64,000 bases of DNA from contig NC_135763.1 of the NCBI RefSeq assembly GCF_052425735.1, forward strand, positions 1,426,001 through 1,490,000. The letters are read 5' to 3'. This DNA is from Oculina patagonica (taxonomy: Eukaryota). The notes under the pieces are model-generated. The model saw nothing but the letters and a program-made list of their open reading frames with translations, had not been told where the DNA came from and made no database searches. Shown here in pieces: positions 2,188-26,600 of the stretch; within the stretch, counting starts at the first letter, position 1; every line of letters begins with the position of its first letter. The position numbers were made by a program, and so were the translations under genes.

Positions 2188-3057
2188 GTCGGGTTTACTG
2201 CCCGACACCTACATCAACGCATTAGGGAGCACCGTTATTCTGCGATCGGTAAACACCTTGAGGCACAACATGGCAGCAAAGGAGCAAAGATTAATCTCCT
2301 TTTCAGAGTTAAAGAAATGCAGAAGCAAGTTTGACTGCCTCGTATACGAAATGCTGTTCATCAGGGACATTAATCCTTCCCTGAACACCCAGAGTGACTC
2401 TATCCGCGCCAAATTATTTACTTGACACTTCCCTATTTTTAATTAGAACTTTTAGTTTTTCCATTGTTTTACTTTACGTATTATGCCCATAGGACACACA
2501 ACTATTTTTATTGTTTCACGTTATATATATTCTTATTTTAACTATCACTTCTTTTGATTTGACAATGGCGTAGAGTAGCGCCGAAACGTCGTCTACTTTT
2601 TTTAAAGTTTTTAAAGTTTTAAAATGAATTTTTACAACATTTTAGCGTTTAATTTCGTTATAAAACCTTAAATATAGCAATTTATTTTTTATTTATTTTC
2701 ACATGTGATGGTCGAGCTAGTTTCAATACATACATATTATACTCGCTTCTCGTTATTTGGAATTGAAATTGGAATGTGTTTTTACCTTTATAGGAACACA
2801 CATATAAGCAATACTACTGGTAACTGTAAAACCTTTATGTTGTTAAAATTTGCTATTTATCATTATTTTCAGGTGGAATTTTTATAGGTGGTCTTCTCGT
2901 CCGTCGTTTCAAATTAAAAGAATCTCTCCTAATGGCAGCCAAATACTGTCTTATTATTAAGGCTCTCACTGCACTTGGCAGCATTTTGTGGATTTTTCCA
3001 GGATGCAAAGAAGTGCAACTTGCAGGAATTATCAAACCTTACTGGGACAGGTATGTA

Positions 3058-3876
3058 AAGGCCCAGTAATACGGGCTTCTCTTTCAACTTGTCTCGCAAC
3101 ATTGTTACATTGCAAGTTGTAAAGTGTTGTTGCGCGTATTACCTCCCGTATTGCAAGTTGTAAAGTGTAGTTGCGCGTATTATCACCCGTATGCAAGTTG
3201 TAAAGTGTTGTTGCGCGTATTACCTCCCGTATTGCAAGTTGTAAAGTGTTGTTGCGCGTATTACCTCCCGTATTGCAAGTTGTAAAGTGTTGTTGCGCGT
3301 ATTACCTCTTTCAACTTGTCTCGCAACATTGTTACATTGCAAGTTGTAAAGTGTTGTTGCGCGTATTACCTCCCGTATTGCAAGTTGTAAAGTGTAGTTG
3401 CGCGTATTATCACCCGTATGCAAGTTGTAAAGTGTTGTTGCGCGTATTACCTCCCGTATTGCAAGTTGTAAAGTGTTGTTGCGCGTATTACCTCCCGTAT
3501 TGCAAGTTGTAAAGTGTTGATGCGCGTATTACCTCCCGTATTGCAAGTTGTAAAGTGTTGTTGCGCGTATTACCTCCCGTATTGCAAGTTGTAAAGTGTT
3601 GTTGGGCGTATTACCTCCCGTATTGCAAGTTGTAAAGTGTTGTTGCGCGTATTACCTCCCGTATTGCAAGTTGTAAAGTGTTGTTGCGCGTATTACCTCC
3701 CGTATTGCAAGTTGCGGCAGCACGTTGCGCAAAGTAGACAAAACTTCAACTTTTTGCAACATTTTGCCGCAACTTGCCATAGGGTTGATAATATGCGCAA
3801 TAACAACGCTTTACAACTTGCAATGCAACAATCTTGCGAGACAAGTTGAAAGAGAAGCCCGTATTACTAAGCCTTA
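3058..3876. mobile_element. MITE with about 70-bp TIRs containing an expanded 41-bp minisatellite
   Basis: Left AAGGCCCAGTAATACGGGCTTCTCTTTCAACTTGTCTCGCAA versus right TTGCGAGACAAGTTGAAAGAGAAGCCCGTATTACTAAGCCTTA. Unit TTGCAAGTTGTAAAGTGTTGTTGCGCGTATTACCTCCCGTA repeated about 14 times (3110-3714). Confidence 0.85.
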
Positions 3877-6800
3877 ATACCGGACAAAAAACGAATATAG
3901 CTTGAATTTAAATTCAGACCTATGCACCTGACCTTGGTCACCACCTCCTGAAAGTTTGCTGGGTTCTAAGATTAAGAAAATTTATGATTTGATTTTTCAC
4001 TTGGTTCTTCACAGCCCGACGAAGGACAGTTCATTATTCTCAACACTGCCTCGTCCCCAGGCGTCCTCGTCCTTGGTCGTGCACGGTTCGCTTGGTGTTG
4101 TGGGACTGACGTGCACGGTTCGCTTGGCGTTCTGGGCCTGATGCGGACGGGGAAGCGGACGCCTGGCAGATCCTGTTCAGTTTCTTGGCAAAAATGTTCG
4201 GTTTCTCGTCAAAAGGCGTTTTAGCGCTTTTAACAAGTTTAACGGTCAAGAAATCAACACTGGGAGCTACGTGGAAGTTAGTACTGTCAACATGGGGATT
4301 TTGACGGCCTTTCGGATCGTTTTCGTTGCTCTATCGAGCCGATTCTTTTCAGCGTTCACTGAGGCTGGTTTCAGCAAAGCGGGGGTCCCCTTGCTTTAAT
4401 CTAATGTTGGCGGGAAATCTAGCTCAAAATCAGCGATTTATCCGGAGAAATGGTATGAAATCTGAGCAGAAGATTGAACAGAGAAAATCCCACTTTGATT
4501 GCGAGAAGATCGTCAATGGCGGAGGGTAAAGAATCTCTGCCGTCGTTAGAAAATTAAATTTCTTTATAAGCTTCGAACTGAGGGTAAGTTTCGCTTCAAT
4601 CGATGCCAGAGCTGGTTTGTTTCGTTTCTGAGCAGTGCTTAGCTTCCTTACATTTCGGTATACTTTTATTTGTACCTCTTGCAGCTATAAAGTCTATAAG
4701 CAGCGCTCCAGAGAGAGCCGTTCAAGTGCTAACAAGTGTTTTATCAAATTAATGTTGTCCAACGTAGGAGATCTTATGAGAACATAACACATAAACAATT
4801 ATAATGTGTGCTGATATTTTATTCTAGCTAGGTTAACCTCATAATTTACCTTTCTTGACAGAAAGTACAATTATTGAAATTTCAACTTTACGTAGTTCTG
4901 TTTATTTCAGCACTTAATGTGTTAGTGACCAGAGGAGGCAGATCCTACTCAAAATTTCTTTTTACTGATTCAAGTGTTAATATCGAAATTACTCTCCGCT
5001 GATTAATTTGTGTGTTTCTCGTCACTGTACTGCTTGATAATGCATTGATACTGTAAGGAGAAATAAGGTTTTGGTCACTCTTTTGGAGGATTTAAGCAGG
5101 ATAAGACTGACAAACTTGTAACAAAAAAAAATATAGTTTTTTCTAGTTGTAGTGTCACAGGGAGTGTTTTTTAGTAGGTGTTTGTAGAGAATGTGTGGCA
5201 AAACTTTATTCCTAAGGGTAACAAAACACTGGACTATGACAGACAGCAAAACTTAAATTATTTTTGCCGGCCCAAGAGTTTAATTTATGGCTGAGATAGT
5301 GTAGGAAAATAAATTGAGATGCCAGGCAATTTTACATCGAAGGGTTTGTTACTGACTCTTAAATGCATTTCATGTGAACATGGCAACTCCTGGCTAACCA
5401 TATTCAATTTGATTAAAATAAATAAACCGGCAAACCTGGAGTTGCCACTTTTTCCCCAGTCTGCTAATAGCCCACTGCCTCTAGCAGTCTTGGAAAACAA
5501 TTAAAACACTTTAAATGTTGAATGTATGCTTTGCCTACCCTGCTGCTTTATACCCATGACAACAGCTGTTGTAAGAGAAAAAGATACCTTTTTATATTTT
5601 TAAAAATATTTATAGTAGTACTGATTTTGCAAAACCATTCAGACATTTCCCTTCAATTTGCAAAAGTTATCTAGCCAGGAGGGTTTTACCTGCATGGCCT
5701 TAACCTACTGTGAATTTAAATAAGTTGTGCATGAGATAATCTGAGGATTACTGTTTGTACGACAATTTTCTTGGTGGTGCCCTTCATCTGATTATCATCT
5801 AGACATAATAGTTAGCCTTCTCCTGAAAATTAACTTGATTGATTTTCTAAAGTGATTTTCTACCCTCTTCAACCCTCCATGTACAGTTCACCCCAGCTCC
5901 TTTTGTAATTAGTTAATATCAAGTCAGTGGGAGCATAACAAAGGCCTTTAGACACGAAATTTGCAAGCACAAAGTAAACATTTCTTTTCAGTGGCTAAAA
6001 AAGTAAAGAATTTTACAAATACATGTACTAAGAATTACAGGAGAGTGATAAAAAATTAAGAGGGGTTTGTTACTAGAGTTATTTAGAATAGAATGATGGT
6101 GGGCCTTGGATGTCCAAAGATGCTAGCCTTGCATATCAATACATAAATATTTATGAGAAAAATTATCTTTCTATTTTTACAAAGCAAGATTTCAAGATGA
6201 TCTTAAATCATATACCGCACCGGGAACCATTCTAAAAACTTCATGAAAACAGTGTCATTCATCAGAAATGCTCTCTGCACCTGCCCCCAAATTAAAAGCC
6301 TGCATGGCATGGCATAGGGTACATTCCAAACAATTTAGTTGCCTCAGTTGCATTCACAGCATAAATGGCAGACTCACTGCCACAATGCTTAACAAAAAAA
6401 AGTGTGTATTTATCCTTAATAAATTGTGGTTTAATGGGAAAAAACTTTAAATATTCATTATTCCCCGCCCATTTTTCACAAGTATTCATTATTCCTTGCC
6501 TATTTTGAGATCAATATTCATTATTCCTTTAAATAGGTTGATGTTCCCAGGTATACAATTTTCAGACCCACAAAACGAGAGCGGTCAAATATTCTATTCC
6601 AATTCACAAGTTGTGCACAGGACACTGGACATTGTTCTGCTGCTATCCTTCTGGAAGGTGTTAGTTCATCACTTATTACATGCTTTTTTAATGGTGCCCT
6701 CTAGTTACACCTTCAATGGCCTTGATTAAAAAGTGTAAGAAGCATGTGGCTTCTTAGACTTGCCCCAAGTCGCTCGTTTTTTCTTTGCATCTATAGTTAC

Positions 6801-6981
6801 TTAAATAAAATGACCACTTGAGTAAAATCACCTTTGTAATCGCGCGGGATTTATTTCTGTGAACGCGCGCGCGACACTTACCGAGGAATGGCTCGGAACG
6901 AGCGACTTGTGTCACTTGCAGGAAATCGATTCTGGCTGACGTTTATTGCCGCGAAAAATTGCATCATGCTTGTGTGCACTG

Positions 6982-8278
6982 AATAGCGTCGCGCACAAAT
7001 TCTAAAAATAGATTTGGTCTCATGAGACCCCCCGCGTGACTCAGACAAACATTGCAGTCGGCCATAAGCGAATGTATGCGAGAGAGCGTCAATACGTGAA
7101 GAAAACATGTGAAAAGTTAGGTAAATCGGAGTGTATGCTTTCTCAAAGGGTCAAGAATGGTTAGTACAAAGCACTGCTGGCATAGTGAGTGCAAAACCGA
7201 CTCAAAGTATCCTGAACATTGGCCAAAATCGCTCTTAGAGCTGGAGGAATCGGGGAAGAAAGTCTTCATTCCATTCGGCTTACGGTACGAATTGCGAAAC
7301 GAAACGGTACTTTACGAAATGGTACTTTGCGAAACGGTACTGAGGTAAAAATATTGCAAAAATATTGAATGGGGCAAATAAACATTGATTGCAAAACAGG
7401 TATAAGTCATGATAAGTCGACCCAGGTTTGCGTGAAGGATAAATGTGATGCCTGCTTGAATCGAAACTTGTCGCGTCGCGAAAGAATTTATTTTCGAACA
7501 TGAATCAAAAATGCAAAACGTGAATCAGGGTGAATGAAAGTAACATCAAAAATCAGAAATAAAGACGCCTGTAAAAGCACTACTCTCGCTTTAGTCATCC
7601 GAAAATGAAGGAAGCGAAATCTTTCTGCCGCCGAGGATTTCTTATCTTTATTATAGTGCGTGAATGTACGCCGCCCGGCCCGCCAGGTTGTAAATAAAGG
7701 TCGCGTTAGTCACGTTTGTCATTCTTTCTTGTTATGTGTAGTCATGAAAACGAATGGATTAAAAGTCTGTTTTTTAACATGGCGAACGTTTATTAAGATC
7801 GAATAAAATTTTCAAAGAAGGTTCATGAATTTGTGGCATTTTTTTGCGGGGAATGTGTTATCTTTCGGGCGACAAACGCCGACAACTGTGATTATGCAAA
7901 TAACTGCTATACCGTTCAGCTACATTTTTGCCGATAAAAATTATTTCGAGCCGATCAAAATAGCTATTTTCGGTCAATTCTAAATTTGACGCTAGGTTCG
8001 TGATTAGTGTTTAGAAATACGATTTTTTCGAAGGGTTGTCGTTTTCCGCTTAATTTTAGCCCTCTGCACTTCAGCCATCGTTTTAACTGATCCGCAGTAT
8101 AGTTCTCTGCTTCACTTTCAAATTTCGAGCCAGGAACGCCATCATCTTGCGTGAGAACGGCCAAAGACCGAAGCGAAGTGCTCGCGAGCGACATAATTTC
8201 TTCATATCGCTCTTGTAGTTTGTCTGAGTCAAGTGGGGGGTCTCAATTTTGGTGACGTCATTTGTGCGCGACGCTATT
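6982..8278. mobile_element. Internally deleted ISL2EU/Harbinger-like transposon nested in the large element
   Basis: TIR AATAGCGTCGCGCACAAAT plus subterminal GAGACCCCC...TGACTCAGACAAAC at both ends. Convergent ORF starts: THAP-like MVSTKHCWHSECKTDSKY...FIPF (7157, +) and SAP domain YTADQLKRWLKCRGLKLSGKR (8194, -). Confidence 0.7.
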
Positions 8279-8896
8279 GGTTTCTTTTATCGTATTGACG
8301 TCAGTTTCGTGCGCCGTGTGCAGCTGACGCGCGCTGTGGCGTGTGTTAAAATTGCGATTTTCTTCCCTTTTCGTGGGAAATCATACTTAGGGCCCTTGAT
8401 GGCTCTCTCATTTCTGTAAGATTTAAAAGGGACATGCATAAAAAAAAGACATTTGTGTTGTTTGTTCTAAAACTGGTTTAACTGCCGATGTGAGAAGGAA
8501 ACAAGTCTACCAAAGAGCTGAAAAGTTAAACGCAAGCTTGTCTCGCGAGCAGCGCGCGCTAAGTTGGCGGGCACAGCGCGCTCAGTAAGTTCGCGCGCAA
8601 TACAATATGATTGACATAATCTCGATGGCGTCACCGGTGGAAAAATCCACCGGTGACGCCATATTTCAGAATTGGCACGCTGCAGGTGAGCCAAGTCGCT
8701 CGTTCCGCAACGATCCTCCGCCATTTTGTTTCTCGTGCCTGCGCGCGCCCTCCGTTTCCGTATCCAGCGGTCTCCTGCGAATCTAACGAGCGACTTGAAA
8801 CAAGTCTAGTGGCTTCTTTATTTGCTGACTAGCAAAATAGTACCCCCCCCCCCCAAAAAAAGCCAAGCGACATGTTTCAGTGAAAAGCTTTATTAA

Positions 8897-9667
8897 GGAC
8901 GGTGCCTCCTATTGTTACTGCGCACCTGTTCTGCGCATCACGCAATGCATCGATCACACCGGGCGCGCGCGCTTTTGATGAATTTGCTCGACCAAGCGCG
9001 CGACTAAAAAGCAAGAAAGATTTCTTTGCGACGAAATCTAGTTTATGGACATATACTAAGGCAGGAACAGCGGAAACAGCAGAAGAACAACATATCAGTA
9101 ACCATTGACCTCTTACACTGAAAATGGCTCACATTGACAGATAAAAACAAATCGCTAAGCGCTAAAACGTAAACTGCTAACTACATATGGCGTAGTGCAC
9201 GCGCGAGATGCAAATTTTTAACTCGCTAGGGAGGGGATAGGAAAAATGTAACAGACCCCAAAAGCGATTTCACAGAGCTTGAAAACAACTCGTATAACTT
9301 TTAAAAACGCGTGGTGACCCCTACTTTTTATTTTATAAAATGGAAGTGGCAAGCCTAAAGAGCACATGTTTTATTTGTCATTGAGTGAAAAAAAGTTTAG
9401 GCCGATTTCGTGGCCGTGCAAGTGAGAGCTGTTAGAGTCAAAAATAGCTCAAACGCAATTATTTTGTTAATAGAAACGTGGATCACGCAGTTCCGAAGAC
9501 ATTATTTGTTAGTTATTTTAAAGATTTTTATATTTTATGTTGATTTTGTTCATGTACAAACAATTTCACATGGAATTTGCAAGGAAATGTTATTTAGTTT
9601 TACCTTTTTTTTTAAATGCCACGTCAGCACTTTTTTCCAGTTTTCAAACCAAATTATATCGAAAATT

Positions 9668-9700
<33 letters not shown>

Positions 9701-9775
9701 TAATAGCCCTTGGTAACATCTACATTTCTAGTCATCGGCCGGACAAAAATACCTTGTTATTAGTAGGCACCGTCC
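8897..9775. mobile_element. Non-autonomous TTAA-targeting TIR element (Kolobok-like)
   Basis: TTAA|GGACGGTGCCT ... AGGCACCGTCC|TTAA. Confidence 0.8.
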
Positions 9776-10309
9776 TTAAACAAACAATGACGACAATGCG
9801 GTCCAACCAATGAGTCTATATAATCTGGAAAACAATGAAGTGTTGCACGATGTTTATAACAAGTTCTTTTGTAGGCCATTGTACAAACTTGTTCGAAAAC
9901 GCGTTTATCTCCTTAACATCATCACTCGTGCAATCAAGTCGAAATTAGTGCACCTAACAGAAATACATAATATCACACCCGCTTTAAGCGAAGCATAGTC
10001 TTTTGAAGCATGTACAAAGACAACAACTGTACGTAACCATAACGACTTGTCTATCAAGAGTTACTTCTAAACCAATAAGTGAACAACGGATAAAAGATAA
10101 ATGTAGTGTTTGCCTTCAGGAATAACAGGAACGGTACAAGTGCCCACAAGTACGTCAACGGGCCACATAATTTAAAAGTAGCATTCTGTTACCAATCTGA
10201 GTATTATTCCTATATCATGACACATTTTACATTGAGCACCGCTTTATGAGTTATCTATTTTCAGCTGTAGCTGTTAGATCAGCTTTGTGATTTTTCAAAA
10301 AAGTTCGAC

Positions 10310-11995
10310 ATCACCGTAATCTAATACGGGTTGCTGTTCTCCCTGTTCGTGTACGACAAGAAACCCTGGATGGTCCTCCCGGCTGTTCGTCGTCTGAGGC
10401 ATCTGAAGCCTCATCCTCGGAGTCAATGTCACTGTCTACGCCTCCTTTGAGTATCCGCTCAATTCTTAAAACTTCTTGCTGCAAAATTGTGTACAGTTTT
10501 TCATTTGGCAGACCCTCATTGACTACTTAACAACTTCGACGCGGTCAATAACTGAATACGGCGAATTTCGACAATCTGAATATGACTCTTTAAAGGTGTA
10601 TTTGTCTCCCGTTTCACAGTTGTCGAGCCATGTTATGCTCATACAGTCGTCAACGAAATCTATTCCGTCATTGCTCCCTTTCTTGATCAGCAAATCTTTC
10701 ATAAGAACGGCAAGGAAAAATCACCATTCCTCTTTTTTTCTACCGTGTTTCACTGCAATGGTCTCATTTTGCTTGAACAAGATGTCGCACTGAATAACTC
10801 GATTATCCTGGGAATAGCTTGACGAATTAGCATGACCTGCGGCCAAGTCTTCTGTGAGGACATCACAACTCGAATCTTGGCGCTGCTGTAAAGAGAATGA
10901 AATAGGATAAGGTAGCTGACCGTTTTCTTCTTTACTCTTGTATCTTACGGTATGCTGGCAAACGCTTCGTCCAAATGAAATGGCAAATTCACGTAAAGTT
11001 TTCTTCTTTTCAAGAGATAAATTTTGCAGATCACTTTGTACTGCATCGACAATTGCCTGTGGAATGGGCGGAGGATTGTTAAGCACTTTGTTAGGATAAT
11101 AACTGTTAGGACCAGTGAAATATTGAAAATCACCACTGTGCATTCTCTTTTCCAGCTTTCTTATACAGGCGGCACGCCGGATTCCGTATTTGAGCTGCGT
11201 TGGCATCGAGTCCTGTTGCCGCATTAAGGAGAAAAAATTCCCAACGATTAAAGTGGTAGGTGCGGAAAACAGAATCTGGTTGACGAGGTCTTCTTCCCCT
11301 AATTCTGTAAGAAGATTTTTTAATTTCCCAAGGCTGCTATGAATCAGTTGAAATGACCTTCTTGTACAATGAGGTATTATTTGGTCGGGACCTTGAGTAG
11401 CTGTACGGCCCGTTCGCTCACGTGTTTCCTCTCCCCAGGTCAAAAGAAAAGCAACAACATTGTCAATGATCGATATTCCTTGATCAAAGGAAAATCTTGG
11501 TGGGCCACGGTAGTGATCAAGGTTAAATAGTTCAGCATACTTATAAAAGACATCTGACAGCTTCTTGAAAGGTTTCCCGTTCGTTATCATCCGAATGGCC
11601 TTATTTCCACTGTCGCAAACGAAAAGTGTCCTTCCAAACGTTTCCAAGCCATGAGGTGAGTGTAACGTTGCTGAGCTCACTACTCCATCCATGTCTCCAG
11701 TTTCATTCGAACTACCGGTCACTAGTTGGTATCTCGGGACATGCTCAATGTCAGATTCTTTTACAATCGTATGATTGCTAGAGTTTGATACGTAAAGGCA
11801 ACAATATAGGAAGCAAAGTCCAGAAGGAGAGACGATTAATTCAGAAGCAACAGAAGACAGTAACGTTCCATTCCTCGAGTCAATAACGAGAATATTCGGA
11901 TTACTTGTCAAGTTACTTGCAACATACAACTTATTTTCCTGGAAGGCTAATGCTACAGGCAGAATGTTGGTAGGCGTGTCCTTAGGTGGGTACAC
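10310..11995 (-). pseudogene. Decayed NHL-repeat (beta-propeller) protein with transposase-like C-terminal region
   Basis: 424-aa ORF with NHL-type repeats (SPSGLCF...LYVSNSSNHTI; GDMDG...ATLHSPHGL...LFVCDSGNKAIR). The frame continues through TGA at 10721 (EEW*FFLAVLMKDLLIKK...) and, with more lesions, to an acidic tail and RTRTGR near 10310. The N-terminus appears deleted. Confidence 0.7.
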
Positions 11996-14612
11996 AAGAT
12001 GCAGTCAATTTACGGGAAAATATAGACAACTGGATGGAAAATTAAAAACGTAACTAAACGCTTTCTAGCCAAGCTACATCTTTCAAACTTGGTGAATAAA
12101 AACTTTTGCCTAGCATTTTAACTTTACAATTCATAATTTGTCCAGAATTCAATTTTTGAAAAAAAATATTGCCGTCGGATTTCCATACACACACTATAAT
12201 TTCTCACTGCGTTGCCTACCTGCAAGATGGCGTGAAAAACCGTGATAAGGCCAATTAAAACATTTTTTTCGTGGTGTTCTGTTTTCCAACGTGGAATCTG
12301 TGAGCTTCAATGTGAGCTAACAAACGGATAAAAATGTTTAGATTCGTTAGTTAGCAGAGTTGAAGGGCCAAAAGTTTTCAAGTTCGATTCAAGTCTACTT
12401 TGAGATCGACTTTGAGGCTTGTGAACTATCATTGTTCATTCAATTCGGAAAAATAGTATGTTATCCTTTTCACCTTTCACTGTGACTTCTTGTCTGTAGC
12501 GTTATTTGGTTTCGCTGGCAGACTGAAGTCAACATGAGTTTCGGATGAGTTTATTAGCGGTCAAATGGCGAAGATGCATGGATCTACTTGGATTTTAAAC
12601 ACTACACTTAGAAATCGATTAGAAAAGAACTCTCGATTTTTATTGTTGTTGTCGTCGTTGTTGTAAGCTTATGGTTTGGAAATCTGTTCGAGTTAAAAAT
12701 AGTTTAAAAGCTTTACTTACCTGTCTTTCCTGTGCTTTCCCATCTTTACAAATCCGAACAGTTCTTAGACCGTAACCAAAGCGTCGAAATTTAAAGCGGT
12801 CAACTGAAGCATGTGCTTTGAAAGTGACGTCACAAAAATAATATCTCCCTTGGGGAGTAGTCCGCCTGGCAAATTTTGCAAGCTTAACATGAGGCAGATC
12901 TAGAGCGCCTGCCAAATATCTAAAATATAGAACACCTGCGATTATTATTTGGAGACAGAGAGGGTGAGGAGAACTTATTTTCTCTTTGCAAGTATTCAAT
13001 ATTCTTGATTAAAAAACTGAGTATTCAATATTCCTTACAATTTTGAGCCAATATTCAATATTCCTTTACAATTTCAAGCCAGTATTCAATATTCATTATT
13101 CCGCTTCAACCCCCGAACCTACTGGCAATCAATACAAAAATTGCATTAAAAAAAATTACAGTTATGATATCAAACATTTTTAGTGTAATTTTTATTTTCA
13201 ATTAATACAACAACTATCAAAGGTTGTGCTTGATTTCTGATAAGCAGATAATTAACATTTTATTGAAGTAAACCAGAGATAGTAGAAATGACATCCCAAA
13301 GACAGATGAATTGTTATTTGTATCGATGGATTCATACTGTTGTTGCATTATCTTTGTCGCGTCTGGCTTAAATGAGCGTCCATGGAATAACTAAAAGGCA
13401 ACTAACTCTCGGGCTCTACGAAAAAAATTCTACACAAAACAATTATGGAAAGGATAACTAATTTTCTTGTCATTTACACTCGGATTTACAAGACAACTTC
13501 GATAAACGGAAATGAGTACCTGTCTCTCTTGGAGTTCGGAAAATGTCATTAGACATTTCAACGTCTCTTTGCCGTAAAGGATTTAAAGCTTTTTAACTTC
13601 ACAGAGAGTGCCTCGTATGCTCCTGGCTCTTTTCAAGCTGAGCTGGGACATGAAGCGTGCGAAAATGGTGGTGAAGTCCGTCGTCTTATTAATAAGAATA
13701 TTTTTCATAAAAGATGTGTCCAAGGCGCTCTGTGCTGTAAAAATGCTAAATAGACGGCTCTTTTGCTGTTTTTAATACACTTTTCAGGGTTGATGACATT
13801 TTGGTCTGCCATATTGAATGCAAGATCTGCCAGGCGCTCCGCGGCTCGCTCCCTAACCATCAATCCCCGCGCTCCCTGTTTTCCCGCCTTACCGCCTCAA
13901 CGTCCGGCCAATCGGCGCCTGGGGACGAGGCAGATTCTCAACATGCAACAGGAACTGCAGTTGCCCGCTGTCCCAGATCAGACCTGTTTGTGGTGCGGAC
14001 AAGTTAACATATTTTTCGCCTTGTTTTGCCGGTTGTACGTCATCAGCCGCAAAAGGGGTAAAATAAAACGCACAGTGCTCAATTACTATTATTAATACTA
14101 ACACTTATCTAAATTCTACACAAATTTGTTATGAAAGGTTTAGGCTGTTCCTGGCATTCGGTTAGTTGAACCCGAAAAGAACGCCGTTTTTTTGCGCTGC
14201 TCCTCAACTGCAAAAAGAAAGCGTACTGGCACGTTTAAAAGGTTTAAGGTGGTCAACATGCAAAGTGAAACGTTTGCAGAATGTAAAGCTTAACAGTCTC
14301 AAAAAAGGCTAAGTATTTATGAGGAAATCTAGCTTTAACTCATCAAATGTCTTTTCTATGGCAGGTTTTCTCCAAATGCAGTTGTTTAACAGCAGATTTC
14401 TTCAATGTCTCAGGCCCTGAGACTGTTCGTGGATTTTGTGACCGTGGCTTCAGTTGTGATAACTACATTATATTTCTGGTTATTTTAGTGTCGATTCTCT
14501 TCATTAATTTTTTCCTCGCCGTTCCTCAGAAGACTGTGATATTAAGGTGAGAGAGATGTATAGAAATATTGAAATATAAGTACAAGATACTTAAAGTAAG
14601 ATTAACTACTCA

Positions 14613-14940: not shown

Positions 14941-17640
14941 GAATGCTTATTAAACTACAGCATGGGTTGTGCAAGAAGCTCACAGTTCATTAATGTTCCG
15001 TTTCCAGGTCGGTTCCTGATAACATACGCTCCTACGCGTTTGGCTTTTCGTTCATACTTCAGAGGTCTCTTGGACTCCTTCCAGGCCCCATAGTGTACGG
15101 TTGGGGGTTTGTTGACACTCAGTGTCTTGTCTGGGGCCGGAGCTGCAGCAGACGAGGAAGCTGTCAATTCTATGACGTAAACGGCCTATCCTATGGCTTT
15201 ATGTACCTCGGTGGAACATTTCAAGGTGAATAAAATGTAAGGCTATTGTCACGTATCACGTATGGGCACCATAGTAAAATAAGATCAAAAGAAGTTCGTT
15301 ACAGCATCGGAACCCGGTTTAGGTTCTAGGGTGCAACTTCTATAAGGTTCATTTCATTTACTTCTGAGATAAGATCTGAATCTTGCTGCGACCCGATACC
15401 TTTTTAACTGTTTTAAACCGTCCGTGTCACGGTTAGTTGTGAACTTTAAAACGGCTTTATCACTTTTCGACCACAAAATATCGATTAATTTTCTGGGATG
15501 AACCGACGTCAAAAATAAAGAAACAGCTAATGCTGCCATTTATTGTCACCGTCCAACAGAGCTTTACTCGGCATATGACGCCATCGTGTCATTTGACTCG
15601 CCATAGGAATTAGTCACATATGATTGCATTGCCTCGCGGACATTGGAAAGAAAAGATTAGTTGTTGATTAGTCTTAAATTTGAGAAATTAATGGGTGAAG
15701 TCTTGCGCTTTTGTTTTGTTTAATTTGAATTAATTACCTAAAACATTCTTCTGTTCTGTCTCTTTAGGGATGGCTACTTTGTTCTATCTTATTTCGTTTT
15801 GGTTCTGCAAGCGGAACGCCTCAAAGAAAGTAAAGAGGGATAACATATCTACTGACGAAGTCAAAGAAGTAATTTGGAAAGAGACAACTTTGTGAAGAAA
15901 CTATTTTTAAGATCGACGGTTAGGAAAAACCGAGCAAAACCTTGATTTCGTGGCAGAAGTGCGAGCAAGAAATTAAACGGTTTCTGGGGTGGGGGGCGGG
16001 GGAGGAAAAGAGACTGCAGTAAGTGAACATTCATCGTACAAGAGCATTTTAGAGAGTTGTAGACCTTTTGGGTTTTCCTTTGTATATATATTTTCTTTTT
16101 TAGCAAAAGTCTTATAAGTCGCGGCAGGAAAATTTAATTTGACTTTTTCTTATCGTTTAATATTATTTTTCTTGGTTAATTAGCATAATCTTGCTGAAAT
16201 AAAGTTATTATTCATTCATTCATAGGGCAGTACCACACAATAACAACAAAATTAGTCGCCATGTCGATCGAGCAGAAATCATTTTATTAAGTAGTACTTT
16301 ATATTATGGATAAGTTTTACTTTGAAAATGATTGATACGTGCATTAAAAATACCCCCAAAACCTTTAGCATATTAGCTGGTTATATGTTGTAAGCAACTT
16401 CATATGCTACATTTGTTGTATGGCAATTTCTTTGCCAAACGTAATAATATAAACGAAACAAGCAAAGATAAGTGACTACACAAGTTTTTCTCCGACCGGT
16501 CGGAAAATTGATTGCGATTCAGATCGTTGGGCCGTCACAGTCGACCCGCGGAACCGCCATCTTGATTCATTTGGGGATCGAAATCTGACAGAAGATAGGA
16601 CAAATCTTCTCCGGGTATGGGGACGGGTAGGTGACGCGACGGCCGGATTCTACAAAGGACTATTCACAGTGTAGGAGGATGGGGACCATATTAAAAGACC
16701 TTATCATGCAAAAGGATAAAAAACAAAAGAATGTTCTCAACTACCGTATAGCCCTACCTTAAAATCGTTTGTCTTTTCGTGCAGAATGGGAAATACCCCT
16801 ACCTTTTTCCCTAGAATAAACGTCTCCCTCCTTTCCTCTGTCTTACGTTTCCTGTCTGGTCAATTAATAGTAATGATGTCACAAGGCAATTAAAACCTGT
16901 TTGTGCTGTTACTTAATTCTTATTTACAAGCATTATTTCGAGGTTTAACTTACTATAAGATATCAAAACGGGAACTAAATAGCTTCTTATTGTTTAGGTC
17001 GACATGCACTGAAAATCTGCTCTTTTTCCAAGTGCTTTCATAGCATAGGTACGTGCACTTTTAATTTTTGTTTAATTGTTGCGGTCTTAGAAAATGCTGT
17101 AAACCACTTGGCACGATTACAGTTGTAGGCCATTGTCAAGTCCTCCGTCCACACGGGCATCTCTTTTGATTACGCACCCACTTAGAGTCTACTTAGTAAC
17201 CAAAACCTTACCTATCAAGTGAACGAATATTAATTGAGGGTAGGTTCCAAGTCATCAAATGTTTGTTTTTTCCTCTGATTCACTTTCAGTAACCTATAGT
17301 GTTTTTAATTATGAAAAGGAACATTTCTCCAAGTCTATTAAATCTAACCAAGCTTATATATACATGGAATAGGGCTTGGGTTGACCGAGCGATGATGGAG
17401 ATCAAAAACACAAGCAACAGTAGAATCCCGATTTCTCGACTCTCGTTTCCTCGAAACTCCCGATTTTCGTTTCCCCTGGAGGTTCAAGAAATCAGGATTC
17501 TGCTGTATTTCGATAACAGAATAATTTACATGTGAATTGCAGGAACTAAACACAAATATAGCCTCCATCCTTTTCTTACAAAGGCCGGGCTGCTGACCAA
17601 GCAATTGTAAAATGCAATAAGTTTGTGCTAAAGTGTTGCC

Positions 17641-20600
17641 TCAAAGTGTAGTTTCTTTGGACACTTCAGTACTCAACAGTTCATTTGTTTCAGGTTGGTC
17701 TGAAACTTGACTTCTTTCTTCAGTGTCATAGCTTGATTTGCAGAACCAAAAGGTCAGGAAATAGAACACTAAAGCCAGACCTGAAGATAACAAAGAGGAA
17801 GATTCTTATTATGGTCATGATTATTATTGGATAACCCCACGAAAAAAAAACTGAGAAAAAATCACGCGACATAGACATTGACCTAGTCATGAACATAGAC
17901 TTAGACGTAGACAAATACATAAACATAGACACAGACATAGACATAGACATAGACATAGACACCGACATAGACATTGACATAGACATAGACCCAGATATAG
18001 ACTTAGACATAGACACAGACATAGACATAGACATAGACATAGACATAGAAATAGACATTGACATAGACATAGACATAGACATAGACATAGACACAGACAT
18101 GAACATGGACCTAGAGTCAAGATATTGAGCATCAAACTTAACAGAACGACTCAGAACGATCTAGACAGATATCTATCTAGTAAGAAACGAGAGGCACCGT
18201 GAACAGTAAACTAATGGTTAGTGCAAGCATCAAACGGCTGGGTGCTCCTGTGTTAACAAGAGCAACAATGGCTTAAAAGTCAGACCAAAGTAATCTCTCT
18301 GGAAATCACAAAGAATACTGATAATACAGTAAACCAACCAAATTTACAGTGTGTCTACTCCAACCAAGGCCACCCGATATGTTAAAACAATAAAAATGAT
18401 CACAAATTTACTGCTTCTATAGCATGCAGCTGGTGTAGATCCACATTTTGTAAAAAAATCCATTGTTAACATACAAGGTTTTCATTTCCTATTTTGCACA
18501 GATTTTGTCAGGTGGCCTTGGTTGTAGTCGGCCGCACTGTAAAGCAAATAGGGAGCTTCAGCAAACCACGACGGCAACGTGAACGAGAACGTCGCCAAAC
18601 AAAAGGTTTAACGAGCAAAATAATAACTCTGCACGTGCGTTTAAAATCCTGGTACTGTTCTTGGCCGTTCTCTGTGAAACAACTACGTGAAATGACCAAG
18701 TTCTTCGTACATTGGAGAACGTGAACAAAGACAATTATATTTCCGTATTTCTATTTGGGGAACTCTCGTCTTACATATTTAGCTTCGGTTAGTTCCTAAA
18801 CCAATAGATACACTGAATACATCTGGATAATTGCGAAATTCTCGAGTAAAATATAAATTCATTTTTCACCAGGCGTTGTCCTCGGCATCGCCGTCGTCTT
18901 TGCTAACGCTCCCTAATAATTATGTAGCCAGTGCGATTTAGCGCATGGAAAACGCATGCGAGCGAGTCAAGATTTGTCAAGGTTGAATTAAGAAGGTGGC
19001 GCGAGTTTTTCTTTTCACCACTCGCAATGTGTATTAATATAAGTTCAAAGTAAATGCAAATTATTTTCGACGCTCAAGTGGAAACTGGAGCGGAGTGGAG
19101 CTGAAGTTTAGTGCAGACACCTATCACACTGATCCATCTAGGTCCAATTCAATTTTTGGCATAGTAGCATACTTTATCTTTACCTTAGTTAGCAATAGAA
19201 CTGGACACAATCATGACGATGGTTAACTGAAAAACTTGCCTTTTAAACTACACCCAATAACTGTTATCCTCAAGGACAAGTTCCAAATATCATATATTTG
19301 GCATCGCCCTTGTTTTCCACAACTTTCTCCCCAGAAGAGACAAAGAGAATCAAACATCCAACCAAACACGATGGGTCCTGGCAAAAATCCAAGAGTGCGC
19401 TGGAAAATGAACTGGAAACCAAGAGAGTAGGATCTTTGATTGTCTGGTACACACCTGGTGGAAGAAAATGAAAGTTAAAACGGCTGTACTGTACAATTTT
19501 TAATTTTACTTATAGCCTTTGAAAGTATTTACTCGTTTCCCTCGAGAAGGACAGAATCAACTTGAAACTCAAAATTTGAAGTTGAAACTTTTTTTTCTTT
19601 AATTTCCTAAAGAAACTGTTCTACTTTGTCGGCGGGTAATTAAAAGTTCAAGTAGCTTGCGTACAAGACATATATCCCCTGCTTTATGATCGATCGTTTT
19701 CATCACGATAAAGAAGAACTAACAACTTAACCCACCAATTTCTCCGATCCCGTGTGGCCTCGAGGCTCAGTCAGTTAGAGCAACGTCTAGTCCGAAGGTC
19801 GTGGGTTCGAATCCCACCCAACTCAAAATAATTTTATTTTGCCTTATGTGGTCTCCTATCTCTTTAAAGGAGCAATGTCACCGTATATAAGTCATTTTTC
19901 TGCTAATTCCTTTCAAAGTGAAGGAAACCTCAAACTAATAGTTTTCTAACATAGCAAAATAACAAAGGAGTAATAAAAAGGCAAAAATTACCAAGAATGG
20001 TTCCGACTGATAAAAATTAATACAAATTTCGAACGACAAATGTGAAAAACTTTGCCATTTTTTTCAATTAAATGTGTTCTCTGTGACGAAGCTCCTACGT
20101 AATACATGAGGGCAAACGATTAGTAAAGGAAAAATGTGCTCATGAATTTCAGTCCGTCAATTTTCGGATTTCACGTAAGACGAAATTAGACTTGTTTGCA
20201 CATAAGAGTCAAAGGATTAGTGTTTCTTACCGCAGGACCACTGTCTTGTTCGGTATCGCTGTTAAGAAAACCGCCAAAAGTAAAAAACAGCTGACCAGAA
20301 GAAAGTAGTAAAAATTCTTGCATCCCGGTCCTCTGTCACAGTAGCCTTTCTCGGCTAAAGCTTGACTTCCATTGAATGTAGGACCAATACAGCTACAGTT
20401 GAAAGCCTAAAAAGAAGATACTTAAACGTCGGGAAAACCCTGGACAGTCGGAGATTTCGTTGTTTTCCGACCGTTCAAAACATTCCCGACAAATTAAAAG
20501 AATTCAAAGCGTTCTTTTTATTCCCTGATCCGTGTGATATTGCAGCTGCGATGATCGCAAAAATCTTTCCGACTTTTGAAAATATGAATCTGATTATCTG

Positions 20601-23600
20601 GAACCTGAGTTCCAACCCTTTATACTGTCCTTGGCTTTGGTCTCAAAACGAAGCTTGCATCTAATATGGAACAGTGTCCTATATCGGAAACATCTGGAAC
20701 GGTCAGAACGGTTACCGTAGGGTATTAACAAGCACCCTGATTCATCTCGGATTTTCCCGATATGTGAAAACCAGGCTAAAGGGCCAACGATTGTAGTCTT
20801 GGAGCAAATGCCGAGGAAAAATATTACCTTGAAGAAAAATGTTCTATTTCTCACCAAACGCAGTTAGAAGTACCCATTGTTAGAAGTACCCATTTCATTT
20901 GCTATGCAATCTTTCTTCCCTACCAAGCCCACGAAGGAGAGTTCTCAGACCCAAACGGGTTTCCAAAATCTATATTTCATATTTCATACCTTTGTTCCTA
21001 TCACCTTTGAACACCCAGCATGACAAGGCGAAAAGTAAGTCAACTTATCAACTCCACATACGGGGTTTATGTTCGCGTTTGAGCAGCTGCAGTTCATATT
21101 GCATGGGGCCACTGGACTTCTCGTTTGCAACTGGCTATTGATCAAAAAAGCAACAAGCAAAAAATTAAATGGAGGTTGAGTTTGTTCCAATCCGAGGGAT
21201 CTTAGAGGCCCAATGGCTTATTCCGGTGCTTAACTTTGGTGTCTGTAGCAGGGAGTGACTATTCCCCTTGATGAGCAGATAATTTTTCATCAGGGTAGTT
21301 AAAAATTAACTGAACTGCCCATTTATCATCTAGGTCACTAATAAATGGATTTCGATAACAATTTTCGTTGGGTACTTTTGCGCTGTGCGGCCAAGAACGA
21401 AAGAAACTAAACGTTCTTTTAAGAATAAAAGATTTTGTCACCTAAAGAATGTGCTCGCTCATTGTTGTAGCCTGCGTTGTAGACAGCTCGGCCCCGGGGT
21501 TGAGTTCGTCTGCGACGCAGTATATTAGTGGTGGTGCAGTCGTCCATTTCCCCCGGGAGGGGGGGGGGGGGGCACTTCCTATATTGGCCTATACGGGGAG
21601 GCTCTGCCCGAAAGGGGTACCTTTTTCATGCTTCAGGTATATAAAAGGGTAGGGATTTCACAAGCTAAGGTATATAAAATGGTAGGCATATCGCTCATTT
21701 AGGTATTTAAAAATGCCTTCAATTAAAAGATTATGAACAGACGCACCTTATGGAGGTATCATTTAAATTTATCAAACACTACATAAAAATGGCATCAAGA
21801 CTTCTTGTTTTAGGCATTTGTCATGTCTTTTCGGTATATGAAAGGGGTACCTTTTTTCAGTAAATGGTAAACGAAAGTGCTGCCTTTTCTGTCAAAATGG
21901 TATATAAAAGGGTAAGGGGTTGGACTTCAGGCCGGAGCCTCCCCGTACAAAACGTTTTTGAGTAGCCTCCCCCCCCCGGGCCATTTCCTTCCTATTTTTG
22001 TCCCTTCCTGTCTCGTCTCGTGATTGGCACGGAACGTGACATCTGAGCCTGTCACAAGTTATTGCAAGCTCACTTCCTTATTAATTTTTTTAGGACACTA
22101 ACCTGTTGAAATAAGGTTTGACGACTCCCGCCAAATTCACCTGATCACATCCAGGAATAATAAAGGAACTTATAGTCCATAAGGTGATAAATTGAAATAT
22201 CAAGCAGAACTTTGCAGAATGTCGACAGGACTTCTTCAAATTGAACCTTCTAACGATCACACCGCTCAACATGATACCACCTGCAAGACGATCATCGATA
22301 ATTCGAGATTAATGCTAATTCAACGTTTACTGAGTGACCAGTTCAGCTAGCTCCATAACAGGATTTATTGTTCAACAAATGCGCACGCTGCCCATATATG
22401 GTCAAAATGTGATTGTTATCTATCCTCCGTACACAACAGATATCCTACGATATACGTAGGTTGTCAAAGTTCGTCCGAAATCTTGGAAATGCTGCACAAC
22501 CCCAGTTTTTTCTATCTGCAAAATGTTTTTGTTGACAATTTGTTGAATAATAAAACAATTATCCTGCTTAATCTTGCGGTATCAGGCGATATTCCGCGCG
22601 ATTTCGAATTGTTAAAAATTGGCCACCATCAATTCAGTTTTGGTGATGAATTTCGCTAGCTATTTCAAAGCCAGTTTAACTTTTGACAGCAGAGGAAAAT
22701 TTTAAGAATATTGCATCGTGCTGTATATTTCATCGCAAGTTCTACTAAGAATTATTATCAAACACCGCTTGGAGTACAAATAAAGTACGAAACAAGTAAA
22801 GATAACTCACGATATTTGTACTCTAAAAGACCGTTTTAACAGGTTCTGTACACGTATAGTCCACTTATTTCTCCTTGCCGCCGCGCAAATGATTCAAATA
22901 TGGTGAAAAAAGATAACAGATCTCGTGCTTCTGTGGAAAAAAGAGGAAGTCAAAAAGATTTAGATACCTGCTGCGCCAACAACAAATATGGCTCCCAGAC
23001 TAATCCCTGCCATTCCTGGGTTAATACCAAACTTCAGCTGGGCAAACTTCGCAATAAACGCTTCAATCCCTGCCCCGACCAGCGACGCAGATGTTACAGC
23101 CAGCGTATTGAACATGTAGGTTGGATTTTTTAAGAGCTGCATTGTGGCTGGAACGATATCTCTCAATTTTCCTCGCAGTTTGTTGTCCTTTTTTGGCAAG
23201 TCCCCCTCTTTAATTGCTTTATCTCGCATCTCTTTTGATCCGGGTAGTTCACGGGGGAAACCGAGGATTAAAATGGCGCTTATAAACATCACCACACCAG
23301 CTACAGTGTATCCTAGCCACCAGGCCCCTATCCACTGTGGATTCCTTGGAGTTAAGTTAGCTCCCTCGGGCTACGTTTGAAAAAACAATTCTAAGAACAT
23401 GATGGTGGGAATCAGAGTACAAACTAAGCTTCTCAAAAGCGACTATCCTGGAATACAGAGTAAAAAGAGGATATACATGCATAGAGAAAAGAACAAACGG
23501 CATTTTTCTTCTTTATATTTTCATCTTGTGTGGCACAGTGGCAAATTTAATGCTAAAGCCAATATGGCTGTGGTGTATACTCAAAAGACCGTAACAAGCG

Positions 23601-26600
23601 AGTCGTGGAGAGAAATTTCCCGCTCATTTGAAATTCGAATACATTATGTATCCCAATCAAATTCTCGGCTTCTCTAGTTCACGGATTAATTTTTTGGGGT
23701 GTCGGTAAAACGCCGACTCGGGGTCGGGGTCGGGGCTGGGGTCGGGGTCGGGGTAGGGGTCGGGGTCGGGGTCAATTTTTTTTTTTTTTTTTTAATTCAT
23801 TGATCGAGAAAAAAAAAATACAAAGTTTATATTAGCGAGTACGTCATGTTGAACACTTCATCTTCATTATTTATTACCGAGCTGAAAATTTACCATCTTT
23901 ATTATTTACTACAAACTTGATGAATTCGACATTGCTGATCCTAGCAGTATGCAGGACGCGTGTCACTTATCAACCTAGTAAAATGGCCCAGCTCACAACG
24001 AGTCTCTCGTAGCTCAGATGGTTAGAGCGCCCAACCGGTATCTGGGAGGCCATGGGTTCGATTCCCGTCGGGGACTCAGAATTTTTCTTTATCCCATGCT
24101 CGAGTCATGTTGAACACTTCATCTTCATTATTAATTACCGAGCTGAAAATTTACCATCTTTATTATTTACTTTATATTAGCGTGTGGGACATTTCGAGTC
24201 AAAAAAGCATTTTCTTCACAAATTCGCCACAAATCTTGATCCTTATAAGTTCAAAAGTATAAAAGAAGAAATTTGTGGTCTAGCAGGCGACAGGTGAAAT
24301 TGTCTATCTCGGCGGATAGAATTTGCTGACGACTTCTTTCTGAGCGCTAGCAACTCGCTAACATAGCATGAACTTTTTCAGGTTTAAATTAAATTGTACA
24401 AATGTTTGTGTAGCAAGAGAAAATTAATTCAGGTTTATATCGTTAAAATAAAGCCGCCTTTCGTATCCAAAAAAGTATTTATGAGGAGGCAGAATTGTTT
24501 TGTTTAGCAAGCGAAGCTCGCATTAAGGTCGCGCGGGACCCTTGCTCATTAATAAATTCATTAGCCAAATTTCTTGAGGGTGTTCTATCTTATAAAGCTT
24601 TAATTCACTACATTTTGAACATCGATTCCTCTAAAATTTAACAAGGATATTCGGGGATGATGGAATTACCTCATGATTGTCCTTATACTGAGAGATGACC
24701 GTTGTCTGAGATGTTACAAACCCTTAAAAGTTTAACTGCAGATAATGCGATTTTGTGTCCAAGTTTTCAGCTAGTACAGTGCACCAAATTAAATGATTAT
24801 ATAGCCTAGTGATAAATCATAACCCCTTTTGTGCTATGGCTAGAACGAAATTTTCGATTTCAAAAACTGCTACAAGTTAATGGCGTTTAAGAGAGCAAAA
24901 ATGTGAAATCTTAACTTTGAAACGTGCTATCTTCAGTTTGAGAAGGAAATTTAAAAATTCGCTCTAGTCATAGCACAATAGAGTACATCAAGTTTACGTT
25001 CCTCGCGAATCAACTATTGAAATTCTATATCGGCTGAGAAAACTTGGACACAAAATTGCAGGTTTTGAGGCTTCCGAAGACCTTCCGAATCAATGTTTAC
25101 AACAACGGGTGACATATTCAAAGCTGCGAATCTAATTATGATAATTCCCTATGTTCCAGCGCACGTGGCACAAAACGGAGAACAATTGCTGAATTACTTG
25201 TACAAAAGAGTTTAAAAACAAACATTCTCATGAATATTTCGTTTGTTGTCGGCTTCAGTCGTCCGGCAGTTCGTGCATACTCTTTAAATAAATACATACT
25301 AATGATTGCAAGGGTCCTGCGCGACCTTAACATGTCTCGCAATCTTGAAGTTTCTAAATTCTGTTATTGTTTTAAATATAAGACATTTTAATTGAGGTTA
25401 TGCTGACGAGAAAGTATCACACCCGCCTTCAGTGTTAGGTGCATAGCGGTTAGTTAAAACAAACAACACGGATCGAAGTCCGCCAATTACAGCCCACCAG
25501 AATGACCTTTTGACCTTGTGGGTGAAACCAACAAGGGTATCCATCGGTGTTAATTGGCTCATTTCAAACAGCACGTCGAAAGATGCTGTCGAAAGATGAT
25601 GTTGAAAGACGGACGTAGAAAGATAGCTATGCACGTAGCATTAAAAGCGGGTGTAAAATATTCGATTACAGAGAAGTTAACAACAACATCTTATCGCTAA
25701 ACTGTATGTAAAAGTTAAATTTCACCTCTCGCCTGTTAGACCTTAACTAAATTGCTTCTCTTATAGTCTTGAACTTATAAGGATCAAGATTTGTGCCGAA
25801 TTTGTGAAGACCCAAAATGACCCACACGCTAATATAAACTTTGTATTTTTTTTTCTGTGAAATTTTCAGTNNNNNNNNNNNNNNNNNNNNNNNNNNNNNN
25901 NNNNNNNNNNNNNNNNNNNNNNNNNNNNNNNNNNNNNNNNNNNNNNNNNNNNNNNNNNNNNNNNNNNNNNNNNNNNNNNNNNNNNNNNNNNNNNNNNNNN
26001 NNNNNNNNNNNNNNNNNNNNNNNNNNNNNNNNNNNNNNNNNNNNNNNNNNNNNNNNNNNNNNNNNNNNNNNNNNNNNNNNNNNNNCGACACCCAATTTTT
26101 TGTCTGGAACGCACCCCTTCCGTTGAGAATGGAGGTTCTTCGCTTGTCGCTTCGTGCTCGGAGTAAATCTGGCACAACTTCTCGGCTTGCCTCGCGACGG
26201 TTAATATTTGGCGGGGAAAACGTTTCGCAACACGCAGTGAGTCAAAATGTAATAAACGTTTTTAATTATTATTTTGAAGATAAATTATCCCAAGGTTTTT
26301 CTTCACCGCCGGAGTGACAGAATTAAAGCGTCACAAAAAAATGAGATAAAGGCTCTCACCCACGATATAATATTGCTTCTGTAAGCTGTTCCTATTTATG
26401 TGTGTAACATAAGTCGTAAGCAGCAATTTCGAAGTGGAATGATATACAGTAGAACCCCGTTAACTCGAACTCGGATAACTCGAACAACCCCGCTAACTCG
26501 AACATACTTCCATTTCCCTTGGATTTGAACTCACTTTTCAGTCATTTTTACTCGGTTAACTCGAACTCGGATAACTCGAAAACCCCGCTAACTCGAACTA

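Follow-up and report, generated by a model that had tools for sequence, protein, structure and literature searches.

SLCO-A and its split Kazal exon

The window analysed here, a 64,000-bp stretch of Oculina patagonica contig NC_135763.1, contains a gene copy designated SLCO-A, whose SLCO/OATP identity was assigned from exons matching the OATP profile together with a Kazal-like exon with conserved cysteines. The preceding exon in the window (approximately 2873-3050, plus strand) and the next exon (approximately 14365-14546, plus strand) are open and have AG/GT borders, and a further plus-strand exon (approximately 15008-15225) corresponds to OATP profile positions 484-543. The Kazal-domain exon is found in two plus-strand parts, a 5' part of 31 bp (4015-4045), with the acceptor cacag at 4010-4014, and a 3' part of 114 bp (13944-14057), with the donor gt at 14058-14059. 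When 4015-4045 is joined to 13944-14057, the resulting 145 bp reads PTKDSSLFSTCNRNCSCPLSQIRPVCGADKLTYFSPCFAGC... and equals in length the Kazal exons of both paralogs, each 145 bp, at 20990-21134 (minus strand) and 58729-58873 (plus strand). This bears out the first-pass annotation, which had proposed that excision restores a 145-bp exon matching both paralogs.

The DNA between the two exon parts has 18-bp inverted ends, CTGCCTCGTCCCCAGGCG and its reverse complement, at 4046-4063 and 13916-13933, which are 100% complementary. A direct repeat, ATTCTCAACA, has its left copy at 4036-4045 and its right copy at 13934-13943 and adjoins both inverted ends, so that the perfect terminal inverted repeats (TIRs) and the exact 10-bp target-site duplication described earlier are both present. 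The repeat is a true 10-bp duplication, as a 9-bp version would not touch both ends; the alternative description is a 9-bp duplication with an additional A at 13934. This structure is far beyond chance; CTGCCTCGTCCCCAGGCG has 432 forward and 429 reverse matches in the genome versus 0 for the reversed control. Reading from 4016 into the insert gives a stop codon at 4139-4141, where the earlier reading from the native acceptor had also placed it. A 9.9-kb mobile-element insertion splitting the SLCO-A exon is confirmed, and a non-autonomous TIR element does lie inside the Kazal exon, as had been suggested.

SLCO-A has further lesions. Exon 3, the next exon upstream and just outside the window, contains an in-frame TAA (window -773 to -771) at a position that encodes R/N or D in the paralogs. 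The N-terminal exons (OATP profile positions 1-190) were not found anywhere in the genome by a profile search and two protein searches; in an A-type SLCO relative from another coral, they lie within 1.6 kb of exon 3. The complete exon set (OATP profile positions 1-545) and open frame that characterize an intact SLCO gene are not found in SLCO-A. The previous observation that all other visible exons are intact therefore holds for those in the window (2873-3050, 14365-14546, and 15008-15225) and fails for the upstream exon with the TAA. The insertion had also been called a knockout; since the exon before it has an in-frame stop and the assembly lacks N-terminal exons altogether, it cannot be singled out as the inactivating event, and that designation is unsupported. 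SLCO-A is a pseudogene in this assembly. Given how well the other SLCO-A exons are preserved, the gene died recently, and its first lesion could have been the transposon.

If the element had recently knocked out a functional gene, the stop codon and the absence of 5' exons would represent later decay or assembly gaps; this would agree with the four in-window exons being open with intact splice borders and with the conserved Kazal cysteines. However, three independent genome-wide searches returned no N-terminal exons, the sequence containing the TAA is clean and aligns with residues that both paralogs encode, and a single haplotype does not reveal which lesion came first. This explanation is possible, yet doubtful.

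Element A and its MITE family

The outermost layer of the insert, element A, belongs to a family that consists mostly of MITEs of ~215 bp, with two halves to which 4046-4161 and 13835-13933 align. In the left terminus of A (4046-4161, plus strand), the inverted end (4046-4063) is followed by two 32-bp subterminal direct repeats (4078-4141), and the right terminus (13835-13933, plus strand) includes the 18-bp inverted end at 13916-13933. The SLCO-A copy shares with the family these 18-bp ends as well as the subterminal sequence at both termini. About 430 end pairs were found in the genome, most of them spaced 150-220 bp. The interior of A, also on the plus strand, is divided into a non-coding left part (4162-6444), which opens with a short inverted repeat of its own, CCTGGCAGATC, and a right part (13117-13834), at the end of which is the partner of this repeat (13824-13834). 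No ORF in A exceeds 113 aa.

The family also has a 3.2-kb non-coding form, with 40-55 copies in the genome. The segment immediately internal to the left terminus (4159-4760) is present in at least 40 copies, with 96-98% identity and at a constant distance of 116 bp from an end, and five full A copies correspond to window positions 4046-6444 joined to 13117-13933. These two segments have 98.4-99.1% identity to ten other copies and are collinear with the 3.2-kb consensus, relative to which 6445-13116 is extra. The SLCO-A insert corresponds to the 3.2-kb A form plus 6.7 kb (6445-13116) private to this copy. Private substitutions of A amount to 0.78%, the terminal branches of the A/MITE family range from 0.1 to 0.9%, and this family of DNA transposons can be considered recently active.

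The target-site duplication is 9 bp in 12 of the 14 family pairs, including all five copies of 3.2-4.0 kb, versus the 10 bp (or 9 bp plus an extra A) of the SLCO-A copy. Both values are within the 9-11 bp duplicated by Mutator-like elements. No autonomous partner was found among twelve lone ends inspected, all of them degenerate MITEs or A copies, and A must be mobilised by a transposase encoded elsewhere. Since no transposase partner was found, we infer the Mutator-like superfamily of A from the length of the duplication alone. Unlike the typical plant Mutator-like elements, A has much shorter ends (18 bp). Similarly to MITEs and their longer non-autonomous relatives, the A family has short perfect inverted ends, subterminal direct repeats, and no coding sequence, and as in MITE families, hundreds of ~215-bp copies coexist with tens of 3.2-kb copies that share their ends. 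A literature search on coral MITE nesting returned nothing relevant.

Elements nested within A

Element B (6445-13116, minus strand), nested in A, is related to a ~6-kb element, from which it differs by internal deletion. B retains its right inverted end, ...ATTCCGCTTCAACCCCCGA, and the left inverted end (~25 bp) has been deleted along with about 3 bp of A; the left end is kept in seven other B copies. The empty site of B was found in at least 40 A copies. Element C (6755-8808) is nested in B, with inverted ends TAGACTTGCCCCAAGTCGCTCGTT and a 9-bp duplication, GTGGCTTCT, at 6746-6754 and 8809-8817; the exact empty site (GTGGCTTCT) is present in the sister B copies L043 and L044. Element D (6985-8275), with inverted ends AGCGTCGCGCACAAAT and a 2-bp duplication (AT), is nested in C, and its empty site is present in the C copy L060. 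Also nested in B is element E, of 879 bp (8897-9775), with its TTAA site at 8893-8896 and 9776-9779 and an exact empty site (TTAA) in sister B copies. C, D, and E thus each have their own ends, a duplication (9 bp, AT, and TTAA, respectively), and an empty site, while for B the right end and the empty site were found.

The B+E pair is also present at G000:C2:22434787-22439400 and has 98.2% identity to its nearest copy. D has 99-100% identity to other D copies and, for this reason, is the youngest layer. Together, the divergences (0.78% private to A, 98.2% identity for B+E, and 99-100% for D) fit an order in which the outer layers are older and the inner ones younger.

The sole long ORF of the insert is one of 424 aa (10721-11995, minus strand), which matches NHL repeats only. 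Full-length relatives of B encode a protein of 1187 aa, of which this ORF is a fragment, equivalent to the C-terminal third. The reported absence of an intact transposase from the insert is upheld. Searches for a transposase identity of the 1187-aa protein in Pfam, among PDB sequences, and with PDB profiles returned NHL only; the Pfam search for P-element/THAP9 domains gave NHL alone, and the PDB profile search for an RNase-H-like fold gave NHL propellers alone. The predicted structure of its N-terminal domain (residues 110-445) has a pLDDT of 37, too poor for use. Motifs in this protein may resemble those of a P-element/THAP9-like transposase.

Probable origin of the nest and comparison with other corals

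The insert had been interpreted as a composite transposon that moved about 10 kb of pre-assembled cargo as one unit. A composite would have a complete element on each flank; here, a single MITE-like unit is split into a left half of 116 bp and a right half of 99 bp, and each half has one inverted end only. The same interpretation had named copies lacking the nested inserts as the observation that would speak against it, and such copies are found: at least 40 copies of the 3.2-kb family are without 6445-13116. The A/B junction has a full-length match in the genome to itself only, and all nine B copies inspected have flanks other than A. Junctions recurring at loci with other flanks were seen for the inner pair B+E only. 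Movement of the insert as a 10-kb unit is unsupported. Furthermore, three of the five full A copies fetched hold private inserts of their own, including a 721-bp insert in copy L040 that belongs to another high-copy element, and the L040 composite, the one searched genome-wide, was found nowhere else; nesting in place is therefore common in A.

In two other coral samples (runs X1 and X4), contigs track the left flank up to 4045 and then continue with 86 letters unlike the element, and their flanks differ from the window by 1.3-2.7%. This departure at 4045/4046 suggests an empty site in these samples. The insertion is probably young or lineage-specific and absent from other sampled corals, which gives partial support to the earlier proposal of a recent, possibly polymorphic event. 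None of the indexed runs carries the filled junction, a weak result from two sampled words only. The assembly has no alternative haplotig of the site, JGI metagenome contigs gave no match to the empty-site pattern or the flank pattern, and a protein search with an ORF crossing the left flank gave no empty-site candidate.

The insert is best read as a 3.2-kb transposon that was later hit by other transposons, that is, as ordinary nesting in a pseudogene. Here it is proposed that the non-autonomous 3.2-kb A was cut and pasted into the Kazal exon of SLCO-A, which would have created the 10-bp target duplication, and that A afterwards became a neutral insertion target for later elements. B, already with E, would have inserted into A, and a small deletion would then have taken away the left end of B. 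Subsequently, C would have inserted into B and D into C, at which point the insert would have reached 9.9 kb, in a pseudogene where the nest would face no counter-selection. Overall, we consider this sequence of events, with B+E, C, and D nested in place at SLCO-A itself and a pseudogene as host, the probable explanation. The boundaries of the layers, the families to which they belong, and the lesions of the gene are established, and the nesting at SLCO-A itself and the timing of the gene lesions with respect to the insertion are inferred. Some observations do not favor it. With nothing to date the layers relative to the arrival of A, they could have accumulated at a donor site; the 10-bp duplication departs from the usual 9 bp of the family. 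The perfect ends and duplication and the seeming absence of the insertion elsewhere fit a very recent arrival, in which case there would hardly have been time for a deletion and three further insertions; however, the 1.3-2.7% divergence of the sample flanks from the window is above the private divergence of A.

Alternatively, the nest or part of it (e.g., A+B+E) was built at a donor site, and 8-10 kb were mobilised very recently via the ends of A. The perfect ends and duplication would agree with this, as would the contigs of the other samples, which leave the window exactly at 4045/4046, and the sampled junction words, which are in no indexed run. The family is also able to mobilise 3.2-4.0 kb between its ends and leaves clean 9-bp duplications in doing so, and co-mobilised nested cargo exists here in the form of B+E, found at two loci with 98.2% identity. 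However, the A/B junction has no second copy, every other A copy examined is without B, and one event more is needed than for nesting in place. The private inserts in other A copies indicate that nesting in place is routine, and the insert-free flanking haplotypes, 1.3-2.7% diverged, would have left time enough for it. Such a donor-site origin is unlikely, and a still segregating, very recent arrival of the full nest or most of it as one 8-10-kb unit, via MITE-type ends into a coding exon, is rather improbable; if true, it would provide an example from nature in which a stack of other transposons was carried by a tiny non-autonomous element. An assembly artefact, with the 9.9 kb joined into the exon by a repeat-driven mis-join, is very hard to credit: none of the independent read sets was found to span the junctions and there is no alternative haplotig, but a mis-join would not yield an exact 10-bp exon duplication abutting two matching ends of one family, nor would excision then leave an in-frame 145-bp exon.

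Nested transposon clusters were first described for maize intergenic regions. As in those clusters, in the proposed nesting in place the younger elements lie inside the older ones, with their own ends and duplications and with empty sites in sister copies; unlike them, the coral layers are all DNA transposons and the nest is inside an exon, where it would have been tolerated because the SLCO-A copy was already defective. Similarly to the bacterial composite transposons Tn5 and Tn10 and to plant Pack-MULEs, terminal repeats can mobilise an interior, and B+E shows this for one layer. In contrast to these systems, the ends of A are not independent complete elements, the DNA between them is made of other transposons and not of captured host genes, and the SLCO-A composite has no second copy. 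Ips-r is a transposon insertion in the starch-branching enzyme gene of pea, and in both cases a TIR element in a coding exon leads to a premature stop. Unlike that gene, SLCO-A has further independent lesions, and therefore no phenotype is attributable to the insertion.

The finding is mainly a corrected annotation, and for the mechanism it has no implications past ordinary transposon nesting. SLCO-A should be treated in the coral assembly as a pseudogene and not as a fresh knockout, and each of the five transposon families in the 9.9-kb 'composite' should be masked separately. Additionally, the insertion probably differs between sampled corals and could be used as a population marker.

Insertion in the Kazal exon and its state in other samples

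The SLCO-A copy of the OATP/SLCO genes carries an insertion bounded by 18-bp ends of perfect complementarity (4046-4063 and 13916-13933), with ATTCTCAACA adjoining both of them (4036-4045 and 13934-13943). With 4015-4045 joined to 13944-14057, the exon is 145 bp long and encodes a Kazal-like motif; the Kazal exons of the two paralogs (20990-21134, minus strand, and 58729-58873, plus strand) have this length too, and the frame read from 4016 into the insert meets a stop at 4139-4141. The ends, duplication, restored exon and stop at 4141 described in the first-pass annotation agree with the sequence, and the exon-splitting insertion is real.

Contigs of four public sequencing runs, with four organism labels, were aligned to window 2700-4700. 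In two of these coral runs (X1 and X4), the sole contig over 3973-4039 aligns to exactly 4045 and continues with 86 letters unlike the window element. This overhang is equal in both contigs despite different left ends (3814 and 3711), as expected for an empty site, and 86 letters counted from 13944 end at 14029, immediately before a CpG. The overhang lengths are a strong hint, short of proof, that both contigs represent the empty site. The flanks of the samples differ by 1.3-2.7% from the window and belong to other haplotypes or sister species; the insertion is probably lineage-specific or polymorphic. Two sampled 31-mers across the filled junction are listed in no indexed run, which is weak evidence, and the assembly has no alternative haplotig of the site.

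The A family and its short relatives

The 18-bp end sequence occurs 432 times in forward and 429 times in reverse orientation in the genome (529 Mb) and its reversed control not once, so it is a transposon end and not a chance sequence. The spacing of end pairs, mostly 150-220 bp, indicates a MITE family of ~215 bp, whose left half aligns to window 4046-4161 and right half to 13835-13933. Just inside the left terminus, 4159-4760 has at least 40 genome copies at 96-98% identity, and a diagnostic 19-mer within it has 55 matches, located 116 bp from an end in every checked case. The canonical form of this transposon, A, is ~3.2 kb and corresponds to window 4046-6444 followed immediately by 13117-13933, as in five full copies (L037-L041); no ORF >113 aa was found in the family. 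Compared with ten other copies, the window A part shows 98.4-99.1% identity, and its private substitutions (0.78%) are at the older end of the family range (0.14-0.94%).

Of 14 family pairs, 12 have a 9-bp target-site duplication, all five long copies among them; hence the 10-bp duplication of the window is an outlier, or 9 bp plus an extra A at 13934. Duplications of 9-11 bp point to the Mutator-like superfamily, an affiliation that we only infer because no transposase partner of the A/MITE family was found. The A-specific interior is delimited by its own 13-bp inverted repeat (4160-4172, CGCCTGGCAGATC, and 13824-13836, GATCTGCCAGGCG), at the very point where the MITE consensus runs on without a break; either the MITE equals A without this interior unit, or A is a MITE with a captured element, then amplified to ~50 copies as a unit.

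Nested layers and their assembly

The 6.7 kb of window 6445-13116 are missing from the other A copies, and a genome search with them returned four further element families. Element B (6445-13116) lies in A and has lost its left duplication copy. The B ends TCGGGGGTTGAAGCGGAAT are found in seven other copies; the window B retains the right end only, its left junction having a deletion of ~25 bp of B and ~3 bp of A. Within B are E (8897-9775, duplication TTAA), with an empty site in the B copy L044, and C (6755-8808, 9-bp duplication GTGGCTTCT), a family of hundreds of copies, with empty sites in L044 and a second B copy, L043. C hosts D (6985-8275, 2-bp duplication AT), which is 99-100% identical to other D copies and has an empty site in the C copy L060. 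B with E is common to the window and G000:C2:22434787-22439400 (L043), at 98.2% identity; because the latter is without C and D, E was in B when B arrived, and C and D are later additions. B+E at two unrelated loci shows clearly that a nested element, E, was co-mobilised with its host. The element families are probably undescribed; the phenomenon of nesting is well known.

The first-pass annotation reported no intact transposase inside, which holds, since the only long ORF (424 aa, 10721-11995, minus strand) has matches to NHL repeats only and is the C-terminal third of a 1187-aa ORF (L057:1329-4892, minus strand) in a fuller B relative (G000:C11:6028386-6034361). Around aa 445-770 the latter ORF has an NHL beta-propeller with conserved regions on either side, and its homologs (1140-1196 aa) in other cnidarians, an uncharacterised protein of Exaiptasia among them, are annotated as NHL only. 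Searches of Pfam and PDB, both by sequence and by profile, returned nothing but the propeller, and the predicted model of the N-terminal domain was of too low quality for use. Motifs such as DAMAIK, PDPPHNLKSVRS and VENFFSLMR are reminiscent of P-element/THAP9 transposases, a likeness for which these searches give no confirmation.

An ordinary non-autonomous DNA transposon in the exon would have become a nest for other transposons, and we consider such nesting in place the probable history. Of the five A copies retrieved, three (L038, L040, L041) hold private nested inserts of 446-721 bp, and the composite formed by the one insert tested is also unique, so nesting in place into A copies is routine here. 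One private insert is a member of a MITE-like family with >500 candidate copies. The alternative, proposed at first, is that the ~10 kb of cargo moved pre-assembled. However, the 140-bp B/A junction (13047-13186) has no full-length match but itself, the remaining matches covering half; none of nine B copies has A flanks, and within the 84 kb around the site A, B, C, D and E have no further copy. Other A copies are without the nested inserts, the very observation that the first-pass annotation named as refuting movement as a pre-assembled unit. Movement as a unit, of the whole nest or of a part, therefore loses support and seems unlikely, short of strict disproof, since cut-and-paste transposition would not leave a copy at the donor site and B+E demonstrates that nested cargo can be carried along.

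Other lesions of SLCO-A

Besides the split Kazal exon, SLCO-A has exons at ~2873-3050, ~14365-14546, ~15008-15225 and, just outside the window (locus L054), -797 to -396. The latter reads PKDVHLTR*DPRWIGAWW (paralogs PEGANLTPRNPQWIGAWW and PEGSNLSPDDPRWIGAWW), with an in-frame TAA at -773 to -771, downstream of a normal acceptor. Exons for OATP profile positions 1-190 were absent within 20 kb upstream and, known paralogs aside, elsewhere in the assembly, in searches with the Pfam profile, relaxed tblastn, a paralog exon and an N-terminal exon of an A-type relative. This relative, a 2.6-kb contig of another coral-associated metagenome, is 67-74% identical to SLCO-A exon 3 (~50% for the paralogs), and both its N-terminal exons lie ≤1.6 kb from exon 3. 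Two lesions of SLCO-A, its 5' truncation and its premature stop, are thus independent of the transposon, and the decay of the gene is recent because the remaining exons are well preserved; the single haplotype gives no reading of the order of the three lesions. The recent, possibly polymorphic knockout proposed earlier stands in part: the insertion is probably polymorphic or lineage-specific, but the gene is defective in two other ways.

At the expected place of the missing N-terminal exons, 4-8 kb upstream of exon 3, there are ORFs of 350 aa (L054:1521-2573, minus strand) and 328 aa (L054:4875-5861, minus strand) with no Pfam match. Within an SLCO-A intron, window 3500-3824 has five tandem 41-bp units (3500-3755) facing an inverted partner (3746-3824), and contig depth marks the pieces flanking this array as very high-copy repeats. 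Runs of N occur at 25871-26085 and 43899-44072. The two paralogs flank the region (19286-28854, minus strand, and 54615-60536, plus strand), with all OATP exon types detected, and for one of them the protein library contains a full-length relative of 608 aa (P0005).
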